A DNA stretch of 32,000 bases from Wallemia ichthyophaga EXF-994 (taxonomy: Eukaryota > Fungi > Basidiomycota). The stretch is taken from contig NW_008806285.1 of assembly GCF_000400465.1 (NCBI RefSeq), positions 150,001 to 182,000 of the forward strand, in the 5' to 3' direction. Below are positions 24,547 to 31,138 of this stretch, one piece after another. The notes beneath the pieces were generated by a model. That model saw only the letters and a program-made list of their open reading frames with translations. It searched no databases and was not told the DNA's origin. Positions within the stretch are counted from its first letter, which is position 1. Every line of letters starts with the position of its first letter. The position numbers were made by a program, and so were the translations under genes.

Positions 24547-24733
24547 ATCCTCTCTGGCCTTTTGGCTTAGATCAAGTGTAGTATCTGTTCTTCCAAGTTC
24601 GAACAACTTGGATCGCATAACTTATGCGACAAACGTTCGATCTAATTTTTATCCGCGTCCAGTCGCCCTCACTGCTTGCATAGGATGGCTGGAAGATGGC
24701 CTTGCGTTGCACTACCGCATGTGCCGTCAGCGC
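24547..24733 (+). ncRNA. U2: U2 spliceosomal snRNA
   Basis: ATCCTCTCTGGCCTTTTGGCTTAGATCAAGTGTAGTATCTGTTCTT matches the conserved U2 5' end, including the branch-point recognition sequence GTAGTA (24578-24583). Stems IIa and IIb, an Sm-like site (24644-24651), stem III, and stem IV with the TTGCACTAC loop (24707-24715) are all present. Confidence 0.96.
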
Positions 24734-24875
24734 TCTCTTGCTATCTCTATAATCTTCACATATTTTGCCATGTCTCTGTTGCTTTTAGCAGTGTTGACTT
24801 GATGAACTGTGTGGCGATGTAGAAGATTTGCCGCTATGTATTATACCCGATATACACGTTTTGTTTATTTCTTTA

Positions 24876-26291
24876 ATGCTTACAGTGATCAAGCACACTT
24901 GCTTAAGTGGTCGGCGCTACTCGACTCTGGTGAAGCCACAGTCAACAGTACGTTCATACCGCTTCTTTTAACCGCCTCACACTCCCGCAGCAGACTGAAG
25001 CTCTGGCTTATGTCTCGCATTCTACAGATCCGTGGTTTAATCTCGCATTTGAAGACTGGTAAGAAGCCATCGGAGACGAAGGCTAGCACACTGACGGACA
25101 AGACAGGTTATTCAGAACATCCAGCAAACCTTCACATGTGCTCTATTTGTATAAAAACTCACCGTCTGTCATTATTGGGCGTAATCAGGTGCGTGTGAAG
25201 ACCGTGAAGACTGTTAGTTGCACTTTTTGACACAAACAGAATCAATGGAAAGAAATTGATCTCAAGACGTTGAATAGACTCAATATCCCATTCGTCAGAC
25301 GGCGAAGTGGCGGCGGTACAGTCTTCCATGTACGTAGGTCTTTGAAGGGTGATTTAGTGCTTACGCAAGTCGCAGGATTTGGGAAACACCAACTACAGTG
25401 TAATGATGCCTCAATCGGTATTCAATCGGAGAGATAACGCTCAGTTGGTGGCTAGTGCTCTCAATGAGCTCAGCGTACCAGCAGTCGTCAACGAGCGCAA
25501 TGATATCGTTGTAGACGGCTACAAGGTATCTGGATCTGCATTCAAATTGACCAGTTCGCGCGCTTACCATCATGGAACAATGTTGCTGGATTCCAACATC
25601 AAAACACTTTCACAAGCGCTCAAGAACACAAACGTGAGTCTCATTCAATGCTATAATGTACGTGCTAAATTAACTCAGCAATCAATGGTCACCAAAGGTG
25701 TATCATCTGTTAGATCGCCGGTGAAGAACATAATCGAATGGCAGCCACACATTACGCACGACACATTCGTCGCAGCGGTTATAAAAAAGTTCGAAGAGCA
25801 TCACAAGGTTGACAAGAAGATTATTGTAGGTAGACCGCCCTCCAAGTCACGACTATTGACAATGTTTTAGGTGTCGGACATTGACGAGAACATTTTGAAA
25901 GAAGATGGCGGTAACCAGATACAGAAGCTGAAAGATGAGCTTCAGGTGGGTTCAGTGTATGTAAGTTATGCAAAAGCGTTAACCTCTTGACAGGAGTGGG
26001 ATTGGCACTACGGACAGACACCGGAGTTCACCAACACGCTCTCAACGATAATTGAAGGAACTGAAATTGTCGGTACTGTTTTTTGAAAGCTTTTCATTCT
26101 AATAAGTCTCAAAGACAGCGGAAATTACGGCAAAGCAAGGCAAAATCATTAAGATGAATGTGAGCGGTTTCTCAGAGGACGTTGGAAAGCAATTCATCGG
26201 GAAGAAGTACGCATTTATACAAGTAGAGGATATAGCAGCTTCCAGTGAGATGGATAGAAGTGTTGTAGAATGGCTGATTGAATGCATGTAA
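24876..26291 (+). CDS. LIP3: Lipoate-protein ligase A, mitochondrial (Aim22/Lip3); about 8 introns
   Basis: YVSHSTDPWFNLAFEDW, IIGRNQNPW-type segment, FVRRRSGGGTVFH|DLGNTNYS, NERNDIVVDGYKVSGSAFK, YHHGTMLL, TKGVSSVRSPVKNI, EWDWHYGQTPEF. Confidence 0.9.
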
Positions 26292-26301
26292 AGAGGAGAA
26301 T

Positions 26302-26436
26302 AAATGTCAGAATCAGAGAAAGAAACAGATTAGAGATAACCATTTACTGCAAATCTCCAATTCTAATTATTATAGCCTTGCTAAAGCACTCACAACGACG
26401 TGGATAGGCGTCAGAGGTGAGGAATAATGAAGGCAT
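26302..26436 (-). ncRNA. Candidate box H/ACA snoRNA (hairpin-H-hairpin-ACA, about 135 nt)
   Basis: Minus strand, hairpin 1: lower stem GCCTT/AAGGC, pocket CATTATTC and TGCTTTAGC, upper stem CTCAC/GTGAG plus TGACG/CGTCG. H box ATAATA (26368-26373) lies 15 nt from the upper stem. Hairpin 2 has a 12-bp basal stem TAGAATTGGAGA/TCTCTGATTCTG followed directly by ACA (26305-26307). The pocket is complementary to the 18S motif AGCA-UG-GAAUAAU. Confidence 0.65.
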
Positions 26437-26752
26437 GTAAAGAAACACACGCAGCTTTAAACAGAAACAAAGAAATACATCAAATGCATCAGATACTTAC
26501 AAAAGATGTTTCCTGCGTGTGAAGCTACCGATCAACCAAGACGACCACTAGACAAATGCACGGGAATTGCTATAGCACAAAAGCATAGCGAATATTGCAA
26601 ACTTTTATGCTTATTATCCGCAATATATTGTGCTGGTTTTCAAGGAAGAAAATAACATAAATCTTGCGCGTGATGAATTTTTAAAAAATGGCGTGCCCAG
26701 CTCAGAGCTCAGAGGAGAAGAGTTTTCTAGCGGACCGCCATTAGCCTCAAAA

Positions 26753-27235
26753 ATGAAATTCAGCAGAGATGTTTCTTCAAGTCGCAGGGTAAACCGCAAG
26801 GCTCACTTTGCCGCTCCATCTTCAGAGCGTCGCAAATTGATGGCTTCTTCTCTCAACAAGGAACTTCGTAAGGAGCACAACATCCGCTCATTGCCTATCC
26901 GTAGAGACGACGAGGTTCTCATCGTCAGAGGCTCTAACAAGGGTAAGGAAGGCAAGGTTGTCCAAGTTCAAAGAAACAAGTTCGCCATCTTCGTTGACAG
27001 AGTTCACCGCGAGAAGGCAAACGGTCAAACCTCTCCAACTCCAATTCACCCATCAAGCGTCGTCATTACCAACTTGAAGCTCGACAAGGGACGTATGGCT
27101 ACTATTGAGAGAAAGTCCGTTGCAAAGAAGGCTGCTCTTGAGGCTCGTAACCAAACCAAGGATGTTAACATGTCTAACGCCGTACGTTTCTTTCCTCCCC
27201 TTTGACTTTAAATTCTTACTCACTTTCCTCAGTAA
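26753..27235 (+). CDS. RPL26: 60S ribosomal protein L26 (uL24); intron 27182-27232 separates the last sense codon from the TAA
   Basis: [39 protein letters not shown]...[14 protein letters not shown]...[23 protein letters not shown]...CTCAC...CAG intron is followed by TAA. Confidence 0.95.
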
Positions 27236-28727: not shown

Positions 28728-31138
28728 ATGGACATTTTCTTGAACATTTCCAGAATCTGTCCAAACGATACAGCAAAGGTTACAGAGGCTTCCAGGAATC
28801 TAGCCGATAGTCTTCGTACTTGTTGGTCTCAGCTATTCAGCCCGAGCTAGCTGACTGATATGACCCAGCTGAGCGGAGAGATCAGTTAAGCTGTGTGGAA
28901 GATATACTTGAAGCACTCAATCTACAATTCAAGCAGACGACTGCTATCGACGACGATATCTCCCAGCTCGAGAGACTGACACAGCTGTACAGGGTAACAG
29001 CTAACATCTGTCTCGATAGCAGTGAGTTGCTAGCGAAATGCGTCATATTTAGAATACTGATAGTGTTTTTGTTCCCAGACACCAACAGACAAAAGTTAAT
29101 CGATGCCGATGTTGATATCTCCGCTTTGGGGGTACTCAAATCACTCACACCCCAACAAATCTCGAGTCAGCCATACGCATTCATGCTTAGGGCTGCTTTT
29201 GGCACTCTAATAAATCTCAGCCAAGACTACTGTAAGGGCGTAATCGCTTTACATGTTCTCATCTGATAGGTACACAGCTCCTTCCCAAGAACGCCTTAAC
29301 AACCACGACACTCTGCCGATAGTGGTCAAATTTCTCAACAGACGCAATATTCAAGCGAATGACTCTGCTACAGCTGTTACCCATTCTTATATTTATGAGT
29401 GGGGATGGCGAATCGTTAACAATCTACTATCGACTGGTGAGTTTGGGATGCGCATTCAAACATAAGCTCATCTTTAAGAAGAAAATGCTAAAATTGAGCC
29501 TGGAAGCACTGAGGTAGATGCTCTATGTTCTTGGGTGGAAGCATTTTACAGCCAATCAATTGAAGAGTGAGTATCTAGTTGGGTGAGAGCTTTTTTGACA
29601 CTTAGCAGTGAATATGCTGGATTAGAAGATGAAGATGAGTTGCAAGCAGTATATGAGGAAGACTTATCTTCTTTGGAGAGTGCAACGCTGCTATTAGAAA
29701 CATTCGCGTTCGATTCTGAGGCCGCACGTCTTTTACTTGCTCAAGAAGAGAAACTTGATGTTCTGTTGTCTTTTGCAGAGACTCGTGAGCTTCCAAGAGC
29801 ATTAGCAGCTAGTGCAGATCAGAGCTCAGTGGAGGAGTGGTCTAAAATTTATGAGGAGTGCAAGGCTGCTGTTGGGAAATGTGTTGTCGGTATTGCTAGT
29901 TAGTTCGCATTTCTAGCTACTGCCTCTTTCGTCGTCTAACGCACATCGCAGGTGAAGATCAGCTGATGAGCTTCTTCTTTGACAACGGCAGAGCACCGTT
30001 TGTGCAAAGGATGCTGAGATGGTTGGAAAGCGATTTGCAGAGACTCAACATTAGTGGTAGTGAGTTTTTATCAAGTACTAAATGCTTTGCTGACAATAGT
30101 AGCTTTGGCTATTGGAAACTTGGCAAGATCTGGTAAGTGCGTGGACAAATTCAGTGTCCAAACTAACAGCCGACCAGAGGAGAATTCTATCATAGCTGTG
30201 AAACAATTCAAGATTATACCACGCCTCGTACAATTGCTCCGAGACGATGATGTGAAGGTATCTCATGCTTCCATGTGTCTACTGAAGAATCTATCGCTGC
30301 CTGCGTCTAACAAGGACGAAATTGGTGATAGTGGGGCAATGGAAGCAGCTCAAAAGTTTCTATCGCTCAGCTTTTCGCACGTACAGCCTCTTCAATTTGC
30401 GACCGTTGGCTTTTATAAGCACTTGTGTACGCAACAGTGTGAGTTATCGTTACTGAATGCGTATAGGCTGTCTAATGTGATTCAGTTTGTAACACACTCA
30501 CAATTGTGAATCACGAACCGTCTATACTCGACTCAGTGCTTGTTCTGATCAGCAAAAGTGATGACGCAGGTGTAAAGAGTGAAGGAACACGTATATTGGT
30601 GCATGGAATCAAATCTTGTTGGATTTCTGCAGGCGAAAAGGCTCAATATGCCAGATCAAAGTTCACGAGCCATCCTGTTGCAAAAGCTTTAGTGGAGTTG
30701 TTGTGCAATTACCGTAGATACCAGATCTGTAAGTGTCGTGTGTGTCTAGTTCACATCAGCTAACTCTCAATAGTGATCAACGAGGCCGTCATGGGTCTCA
30801 CTCTGCTTGCATCAGAACGTAAAGGTGCTGACTACATACTCGCAGAGACTTCCAAGCTAGCACCAGCTATCAAACAAGTATTGGAGGATGAGAAAGAGAT
30901 CAATAAGAAGGTCAAGCTCAACGTCTGTATTCTCTACTCTAATCTAGTCCTGAAACAGACTCAGGAAAATTCAAACGCTAAGCAGCGTGAGTGCGGTGAT
31001 ACATTTCTAAATAATATGACTCACTGTAATACAGTCAAAGGCCTTCTCGAACAAGACATAAAGAGTTTGTGTGACGATAGCGATAACGAGTTATCCAAGA
31101 CTGCTTCAACGGTATTGTCAGCTACGACTTGGAGCTGA
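28728..31138 (+). CDS. Armadillo-repeat protein of the SmgGDS/RAP1GDS1 (Bem4-like) small-GTPase chaperone/GEF family; about 10 introns
   Basis: RVTANICLD..NRQKL, AAFGTLINLS, ALAIGNLARSEENSI, SMCLLKNLSLPASNK and VKSEGTRIL resemble SmgGDS ARM repeats. The start codon is less certain. Confidence 0.72.

Follow-up and report, generated by a model that had tools for sequence, protein, structure and literature searches.

A probable tandem pair of box H/ACA snoRNAs and an invariant splice-donor motif in the LIP3–RPL26 spacer of Wallemia ichthyophaga

Dicistronic and polycistronic small nucleolar RNA (snoRNA) units of Saccharomyces cerevisiae, for example snR190-U14, are separated by the ribonuclease III (RNase III) enzyme Rnt1, which cuts 14–16 bp from the loop of a stem. 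The separation of co-transcribed snoRNAs outside budding yeast is largely unknown in the literature. In Schizosaccharomyces pombe, a Pac1 hairpin that spans an exon–exon junction of the mamRNA/snR107-snoU14 precursor frees snoU14 only after the snR107 intron has been removed (Migeot et al., 2025, EMBO Rep; PMC12508059). Clusters that mix exon-borne and intron-borne snoRNAs, only recently recognized as a class, are known in several model species (PMC12508059); in cluster III of Neurospora crassa, a single non-coding host gene carries CD6 in an exon and CD9 and CD17 in introns (Liu et al., 2009; PMC2780460). Spliceosomal cleavage makes the 3′ end of telomerase RNA in S. pombe (TER1) and other fungi (Kannan et al., 2015; PMC4299874). 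The locus analyzed here is the 460 nt spacer between LIP3 and RPL26 in Wallemia ichthyophaga, a basidiomycete of the class Wallemiomycetes. It lies in a window of 32,000 nt of strain EXF-994 (contig NW_008806285.1), and the elements of interest are on the minus strand. An original prediction made from these letters placed a 46 nt intron next to a single H/ACA snoRNA candidate and proposed that removal of the intron builds a 13 bp hairpin that serves as a processing signal. The comparative analysis indicates that the locus very probably holds a tandem pair of H/ACA snoRNAs, with the hairpin a by-product of the 3′ foot of an upstream snoRNA that had been overlooked.

The spacer of W. ichthyophaga was compared with the orthologous spacers of four further lineages, of which L001 is W. 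hederae-like, L002 and L137 belong to the W. mellicola clade and L005 is a distant relative (RPL26 73% identical). Conservation of hairpin pairs was scored on an alignment of 10 rows. The same locus is present in six W. ichthyophaga strain assemblies, with no more than one substitution per 550 nt.

Two H/ACA snoRNAs and a conserved donor motif

The upstream gene, termed snoRNA1 (26504–26634, minus strand; the 5′ end is approximate and the 3′ end is taken as ACA+3), has the hairpin–hinge–hairpin–tail organization of a box H/ACA snoRNA. It was pointed to by a weak H/ACA match (RF00542, 18 bits, at 26638–26504) in a permissive Rfam scan with E up to 10. Folded alone, its minimum free-energy structure is the canonical double hairpin (−33.9 kcal/mol). 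The stretch is conserved in all five lineages, and its helices 1–4 are 93–100% paired, with five compensatory pairs. The H box, AUAGCA (26568–26573, minus strand; alignment columns 111–116), reads AGAGCA, AGAUCA or AGAUUA in the relatives and fits ANANNA in every lineage. The ACA box (26507–26509, minus strand) is invariant in all alignment rows and falls within the region that the original prediction had read as a tetraloop. That prediction had also taken CATAAAAG (26602–26609, minus strand) for a promoter element resembling that of U2, with a transcription start near 26575. The letters are present; they form the variable apical loop of snoRNA1 hairpin 1 and are replaced at that place by GCAGGACUUAG in L001 and UUUAGAAAAAUAA in L002, so that a promoter role is not supported, and the proposed start would fall inside snoRNA1.

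The target U of an H/ACA guide pocket is expected 14–16 nt 5′ of the H or ACA box. In snoRNA1 the upper stem of hairpin 2 has its base 15 nt before the ACA, and the corresponding spacing in hairpin 1 is 13 nt. The strands of the guide pockets are invariant across lineages. Their putative targets are 25S GUGUGAA-U-A-CAAAC (hairpin 2) and the ITS4-primer site AGCAUA-U-C-AAUAAG (hairpin 1); a search for ribosomal DNA among the fetched loci found none. A metagenome scan for the snoRNA1 guide hairpin returned 120 loci, none homologous beyond the pattern and most from an unrelated termite-gut family. Two of the loci, L051 (Ga0315908_10469971) and L053 (Ga0315905_10352665), carry AUUUGUCU...AGCUUCACACACAGAU-ACA, with the same guide strands at the right distance from the ACA, and possibly represent the same pseudouridylation guide in another eukaryote. 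A further 77 matches with a 53 nt span belong to the unrelated termite-gut sequence family.

The downstream gene, snoRNA2 (26302–26434, minus strand), is the H/ACA candidate of the original prediction and proves to be a real snoRNA, with its H box AUAAUA at 26373–26368, its ACA at 26307–26305 and ten compensatory pairs in helices 5–8. Its hairpin-1 pocket is complementary to 18S UUAGCA-U-G-GAAUAAU, at a distance of 15 nt to the H box, and this 18S sequence was confirmed as the fungal SSU0817 primer site. Over the eight helices of both snoRNAs, 95.8% of the cells in the alignment are paired and 15 of the 54 pairs are compensatory; none of 500 shuffled controls reached the score of the tandem pair and slid controls were 36–45% paired. 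RNAalifold gave compensatory changes in 16 of 79 pairs. The H and ACA boxes of both snoRNAs fit the consensus in all lineages, and the two genes keep the same order throughout; in W. ichthyophaga they stand about 70 nt apart. Since the stretch 26634–26504 is kept in all lineages, adopts the canonical fold and covaries, the locus is concluded to contain two H/ACA snoRNAs.

An Rfam scan of the window at gathering thresholds returned the U2 spliceosomal small nuclear RNA (snRNA) alone; neither snoRNA reached threshold. In a homology survey of fungal snoRNAs, about 92% of H/ACA families were reported lost in W. sebi (PMC5824354). Because two snoRNAs supported by covariation are present at this locus and neither is detected at the Rfam threshold, the results suggest that the H/ACA snoRNAs of Wallemia have diverged and are under-detected rather than lost.

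Directly after snoRNA1 lies a 5′ splice-site motif, UUU/GUAAGU (26495–26503, minus strand), in which GUAAGU begins 6 nt after the ACA. The 9-mer UUUGUAAGU (DNA TTTGTAAGT) is invariant in all five lineages, including L005, the spacer of which is otherwise unalignable. Across lineages it starts 3–14 nt after the ACA, with GUAAGU beginning 6–17 nt after the ACA and 57–70 nt from snoRNA2. Given this invariance, together with a chance expectation of only 0.29 occurrences in the whole window (64 kb of strand) and the divergence of the L005 spacer, the motif is considered to be functional. No other 'ACA...GTAAGT' arrangement occurs in the non-coding sequence of the window, and no similar motif was found after snoRNA2. 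To this extent the splice signal that had been proposed for the snoRNA precursor is borne out, the donor being deeply conserved; the acceptor proposed with it is not kept in L005.

The remainder of the spacer is less constrained. Within Wallemia an AG followed by YCUGCKUGUG is kept, and the interior between the donor and this AG varies in both sequence and length (46, 37, 36 and 37 nt). Just upstream of snoRNA2, a UGUG-N(4-6)-UUACA block (26436–26449, minus strand) is kept in all five lineages; RNAalifold pairs columns 251–255 with columns 262–266 in this block, whose role may be that of a mini-hairpin, an initiator or a mark for processing. A C/D snoRNA between the two arms of the proposed hairpin, suggested in W. 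ichthyophaga by UGAUGC, UGAUGU and CUGA strings, was considered and rejected, as no D box adjoins the 3′ arm and the relatives do not keep the strings.

Possible separation of the pair and its alternatives

The favored explanation, which we judge to have an even chance of being correct, is that the H/ACA pair is co-transcribed and that the spliceosome recognizes the donor, cleavage there separating the two snoRNAs. We infer both the co-transcription and the use of the motif by the spliceosome. Judging from yeast dicistronic units such as snR190-U14, a terminator and a separate promoter would not fit into a gap of about 70 nt. The two-gene unit would be transcribed from the minus strand, divergently from RPL26, and U1 and the spliceosome would recognize the invariant UUU/GUAAGU after the ACA box of snoRNA1. 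The cut at the donor would then physically part snoRNA1 from snoRNA2, leaving snoRNA1 as a 5′ exon that ends in ACAUCUUUU, 3 nt past its mature ACA+3 end; snoRNA2 would lie 57–70 nt 3′ of the donor, which is the usual place for an intron-borne snoRNA.

What would follow the cut at the donor can be pictured in three ways. A long intron ending after snoRNA2 near 26274, which would make the locus a 'mixed' exon-plus-intron cluster, is a tentative possibility. This candidate intron (26500–26274, minus strand, 227 nt) would enclose snoRNA2 and would use a candidate branch site CUUUAC (A at 26289) with CAG (26276–26274), the first AG after snoRNA2, both within 26274–26293. In W. ichthyophaga, L002 and L137, the first AG downstream of snoRNA2 is preceded at 14–15 nt by a yUnAC motif; L001 offers in addition a closer AG, 20 nt after CUGAC. 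In L005 the sequence downstream of snoRNA2 is UUUGUUUUAG, without a canonical branch motif. The acceptor region is antisense to the stop and last codons of LIP3, its AG being the antisense of a CTN leucine codon. A search for a stable hairpin across the junction of this long intron found none of note.

It is rather unlikely that the 46 nt intron of the original prediction is used as a feature of the genus Wallemia. The segment GTAAGTATCTGATGCATTTGATGTATTTCTTTGTTTCTGTTTAAAG (26455–26500, minus strand; GTAAGT...AAAG) was described exactly, as 46 nt and pyrimidine-rich, and its length is typical: introns in the window are mostly 42–59 nt long, with yUnAy 6–22 nt before the AG, and about 4 of 24 use AAG. 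Their branch motifs are CUCAC, CUAAC, CUGAC, CUGAU, CUAAU and UUGAC, at −6 to −22. The best branch-like motif in the 46 nt segment is UUGAU, 25 nt from the 3′ end, as the original prediction had cautioned in calling its branch point weak, and its acceptor is AAG. The segment is therefore plausible as an intron by its length and donor, with a mediocre branch site and acceptor. An AG is found at the homologous place in four Wallemia lineages, where the intron of the relatives would be 36–37 nt. Minimum intron length as an objection to introns of this size was dropped, given a plausible 37 nt intron at 30133–30169 on the plus strand. This candidate, GTAAGT...ACTAACAG, connects two long open frames and has its branch motif abutting the acceptor; as a real intron it would be near the lower size limit of the genome.

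Also improbable is a version in which only the first step takes place. The spliceosome would here act as a 3′-end processing enzyme, cutting UUU/GUAAGU 6 nt after the ACA and releasing snoRNA1 with an oligo-U 3′-OH tail such as La or Lsm proteins bind, and the same cut would separate the co-transcribed snoRNAs without an RNase III site. This version fits all five lineages, including the one without a usable acceptor.

Several observations weigh against spliceosomal use of the motif. None of the candidate acceptors suits all five lineages: in L005 an AG is missing from the stretch between GUAAGU and snoRNA2, and the sequence beyond snoRNA2 contains no canonical branch motif. Conservation of the long-intron acceptor within Wallemia is confounded, because it overlaps sequence under LIP3 coding constraint, and the conserved AG-YCUGCKUGUG block is unexplained by the long-intron model. 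The conserved UUU before GUAAGU is not accounted for by pairing with U1. A peptide search across both hypothetical junctions returned only annotated LIP3 proteins, and no transcript support was found for a minus-strand precursor or junction, the sole RNA-derived contig, L149, being colinear over the spacer. The sample itself comprises only five lineages, three of them close.

Contig L149 (1–1181, Logan SRR23314750; W. mellicola clade), when compared with L137 396–1811, lacks five LIP3 introns (43–49 nt) and is therefore RNA-derived. Beyond the LIP3 stop it remains colinear for 285 nt, passing through snoRNA2 and the spacer and terminating within snoRNA1 in ...CACAAAA. This tail is most likely the 3′ untranslated region (UTR) of LIP3, on the strand opposite to the snoRNAs. 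As it runs antisense for at least 285 nt, through half of snoRNA1, the LIP3 messenger RNA (mRNA) and the snoRNA unit would overlap convergently. Look-ups of W. ichthyophaga RPL26 for transcripts returned genome assemblies only.

The model of the original prediction, in which the 46 nt intron is removed and the resulting 13 bp hairpin is cut by an RNase III of the Rnt1/Pac1 type to give the 5′ end of snoRNA2, so that production of the snoRNA is gated by splicing, is very unlikely to apply here. The idea has itself already been demonstrated, since the S. pombe mamRNA mechanism published in 2025 uses just such a Pac1 hairpin over an exon–exon junction to release snoU14. The model also has in its favor a perfect donor, a typical intron length, a pyrimidine tract and the AG at the homologous place in the four Wallemia lineages. 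The hairpin can be drawn as described: the joined flanks CACACGCAGGAAACAUCUUUU (26521–26501) and CUGCGUGUG form a stem of 13 bp (12 Watson–Crick pairs and one G–U) closed by the loop CAUC, with an energy of −18.4 kcal/mol, and the stem ends 11 nt before GCCUU at 26434. Among 442 GTRNGT...AG segments in the window (mean −6.3, s.d. 3.3 kcal/mol) this is the second most stable junction hairpin, which is also what choosing the best case among 442 yields. Perfect 9 bp inverted repeats with loops of 3–70 nt number 10 in the window versus 8.9 ± 4.2 in shuffles; the 9 bp core is thus no more than chance, in keeping with the caveat of the original prediction that short inverted repeats are common. The segment does belong to a non-coding RNA locus on the minus strand, outside any coding gene, as had been stated, but the 5′ arm, the loop and the supposed promoter lie within snoRNA1 or at its 3′ edge. 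The 5′ arm, CACACGCAGGAAA (26509–26521, minus strand), begins with the last 4 nt of the 3′ guide strand CUUCACA and continues through the basal-stem strand CGCAGG and the AA spacer to the first A of the ACA, and the 'loop' contains the remainder of the ACA box. In predicted folds of the naked precursor, pairing of the core displaces the native basal stem of snoRNA1 whether or not the RNA is spliced, which would make the hairpin mutually exclusive with a functional snoRNA1; forming or cutting it would destroy that snoRNA. Splicing does not switch the stem on, as the core is predicted with pair probabilities of 0.93–0.99 in the unspliced precursor and 0.97–1.0 in the spliced precursor. Aligning the RPL26–LIP3 spacers, a check that the original prediction had itself suggested, revealed no compensatory change in the stem, in which a single pair varies from G–U to G–C. 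The 3′ arm, CUGCGUGUG (26446–26454, minus strand), is CUGCUUGUG in all other Wallemia lineages, so that the central C–G pair occurs in one of the 10 rows, that of W. ichthyophaga, and is replaced by a C·U mismatch that interrupts the stem in every other Wallemia row. The hairpin energies in the relatives are −13.1, −12.8 and −9.9 kcal/mol, and L005 has neither stem nor acceptor, yet keeps both snoRNAs and the donor. Helix 3 of snoRNA1 (columns 122–127 with 169–174), by comparison, is 93% paired, and a G-to-A change at column 170 in L005 keeps the native pair (U–A) while breaking the proposed one. Cleavage by Pac1 requires a stem of at least 20 bp and cleavage by Rnt1 an NGNN tetraloop; the present stem is 13 bp, cannot be extended and carries a CAUC loop, the departure from NGNN having been noted in the original prediction. 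The complementarity of CUGCGUGUG to the snoRNA1 foot, perfect only in W. ichthyophaga, is accordingly regarded as probably incidental rather than a processing signal.

A non-spliceosomal role for UUUGUAAGU is a possibility to be taken seriously, if a doubtful one. The motif would be a 3′-end or termination signal of snoRNA1 (a GUAA/G element of the Nrd1/Seb1 type with a U-rich, Nab3-like neighbor) or a U1 site that targets the RNA to the exosome, and snoRNA2 would either be transcribed from a TATA-like element and start of its own within the AT-rich spacer or be released by an unknown endonuclease. Such a role needs no acceptor and so fits L005, and it accommodates the conserved U-run before the motif, which U1 pairing does not need, as well as the co-occurrence of UCUU and GUAA in W. 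ichthyophaga and L005. Every lineage has a TATA-like string (TTTAAA, TATTATTATA, TATTTATA or CATAAAT) 23–38 nt 5′ of snoRNA2, the conserved UUACA-N-GCC might serve as an initiator, and the H/ACA snoRNAs of N. crassa are mostly independently transcribed (PMC2780460). However, the full six bases of GUAAGU, and not just GUAA, are invariant over deep divergence, which suggests pairing with U1 rather than a degenerate protein motif. To our knowledge, Nrd1–Nab3–Sen1 termination is established only in budding yeasts, and the 3′ ends of fission yeast snoRNAs use the polyadenylation machinery. Nothing similar follows snoRNA2, and the short gap leaves little room for both a terminator and a promoter. 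A single stable RNA of about 335 nt with four hairpins, in which the domains stay together as in the tandem H/ACA small Cajal body RNAs of animals and the spacer and inverted repeat are part of the mature molecule, is decidedly improbable. The like order and spacing (57–70 nt) in all five lineages, the lack of an evident RNase III-type site and the conservation of parts of the spacer agree with it. It would leave the invariant GUAAGU unexplained, however, and each domain comes with its own full set of H and ACA boxes, the inner part of the spacer is free in sequence and length, and the spacer pairing is predicted to unfold the basal stem of snoRNA1 in naked RNA; in addition, we know of no tandem H/ACA RNAs in fungi. 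Finally, the LIP3 mRNA 3′ UTR would cross the locus, as the 285 nt extension of the complementary DNA-like contig L149 past the stop into snoRNA1 suggests, and ACTTACAAA, the complement of the motif, could be a 3′-UTR or polyadenylation element on the plus strand. This is extremely unlikely, since the position of the motif is fixed to the minus-strand ACA and not to the LIP3 stop, with a 26 nt insertion in L001 between them, and the motif persists in L005, where the available flank of the contig yielded no LIP3 call.

Promoter region and flanking features

A better candidate for the promoter than CATAAAAG is a TATA-like element, TTTTTTAAAAATT (26676–26688, minus strand), which lies about 45 nt upstream of snoRNA1, is conserved among the Wallemia alignment rows and, to judge from position and conservation, is likely to mark a promoter region of snoRNA1 shared with the divergent RPL26. 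Between this run and snoRNA1, CGCGCAAGATTT (26664–26672, minus strand) is kept among the Wallemia lineages, with L001 and L002 carrying it at the homologous place; lying in the promoter region that RPL26 and the snoRNAs would share, it may bind a transcription factor. The ATG of RPL26 is at 26753 on the plus strand, divergent from the snoRNA unit, and the protein encoded from 26753 onward is 100% identical to the W. ichthyophaga entry. On the other side of the spacer, the stop codon TAA of LIP3 (lipoate-protein ligase) is at 26290–26292 on the plus strand.

In W. ichthyophaga a 10 nt direct repeat, CTTTACATGC, flanks snoRNA2 on the minus strand (26442–26433 and 26293–26284). Its second copy coincides, in antisense, with the end of the LIP3 coding sequence (last codons and stop), and the repeat is weaker in the relatives; it may be due to chance or be a trace of snoRNA insertion. 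The U2 snRNA gene (24547–24735, plus strand) is a full-length match to Rfam RF00004 (112.6 bits), about 1.8 kb away from the snoRNA pair.

Comparison with described systems

The arrangement of tandem snoRNAs with a splice signal between them is uncommon and has already been described. If the favored explanation is true, a conserved donor placed directly against the ACA box of an exonic H/ACA snoRNA would be a further variant, with splicing itself making the cut between the snoRNAs, and if only the first step occurs, spliceosomal 3′-end formation would be extended beyond telomerase RNA. The locus also illustrates that a striking junction hairpin can arise as the by-product of an overlooked neighboring RNA gene.

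Like S. pombe mamRNA, the Wallemia locus would give a non-coding precursor with two snoRNAs and an intron, here a candidate one, between exon 1 and the downstream snoRNA, and in both a hairpin can be drawn over the joined exons, within a few nucleotides of the 5′ end of the downstream snoRNA. The S. pombe stem extends from −15 of exon 1 to +121 of exon 2 with an energy of −35 kcal/mol, whereas that of Wallemia has 13 bp and −18 kcal/mol. The former is absent from the predicted fold of unspliced RNA, varies among Schizosaccharomyces species by neutral or compensatory changes and has mapped staggered cuts; the latter forms in the unspliced RNA, shows no covariation and, unlike the S. pombe stem, is built from essential 3′ elements of another snoRNA. 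In S. pombe a C/D snoRNA is in the intron and the exonic snoRNA is downstream, whereas in Wallemia both are H/ACA snoRNAs and the clearly exonic one is upstream. The Wallemia hairpin thus differs from the class described by Migeot et al. in conditionality, length and conservation.

Like cluster III of N. crassa, the Wallemia locus would combine snoRNAs in exons with snoRNAs in introns within one non-coding unit, and both fungi have short introns. The distance from the 5′ splice site to the snoRNA is mainly 41–60 nt in N. crassa and 57–70 nt in Wallemia. The N. crassa cluster consists of C/D snoRNAs with splicing verified by reverse-transcription PCR, whereas both Wallemia snoRNAs are of the H/ACA type, the splicing is predicted and the donor is only 6 nt from the exonic ACA box. 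As in TER1, a 5′ splice site directly follows the 3′ protein-binding element of a stable non-coding RNA, and the cut would leave a short U-rich tail near the mature end. The element in TER1 is an Sm site and the second step is suppressed; in Wallemia the element is an H/ACA box and no feature that blocks the second step was identified. The resemblance to snR190-U14 lies in two snoRNAs on the same strand, tens of nucleotides apart and presumably under one promoter. The yeast spacers, however, carry an NGNN-capped stem that is cut 14–16 bp from its loop, whereas the Wallemia spacer has no such stem and carries a conserved splice donor instead.

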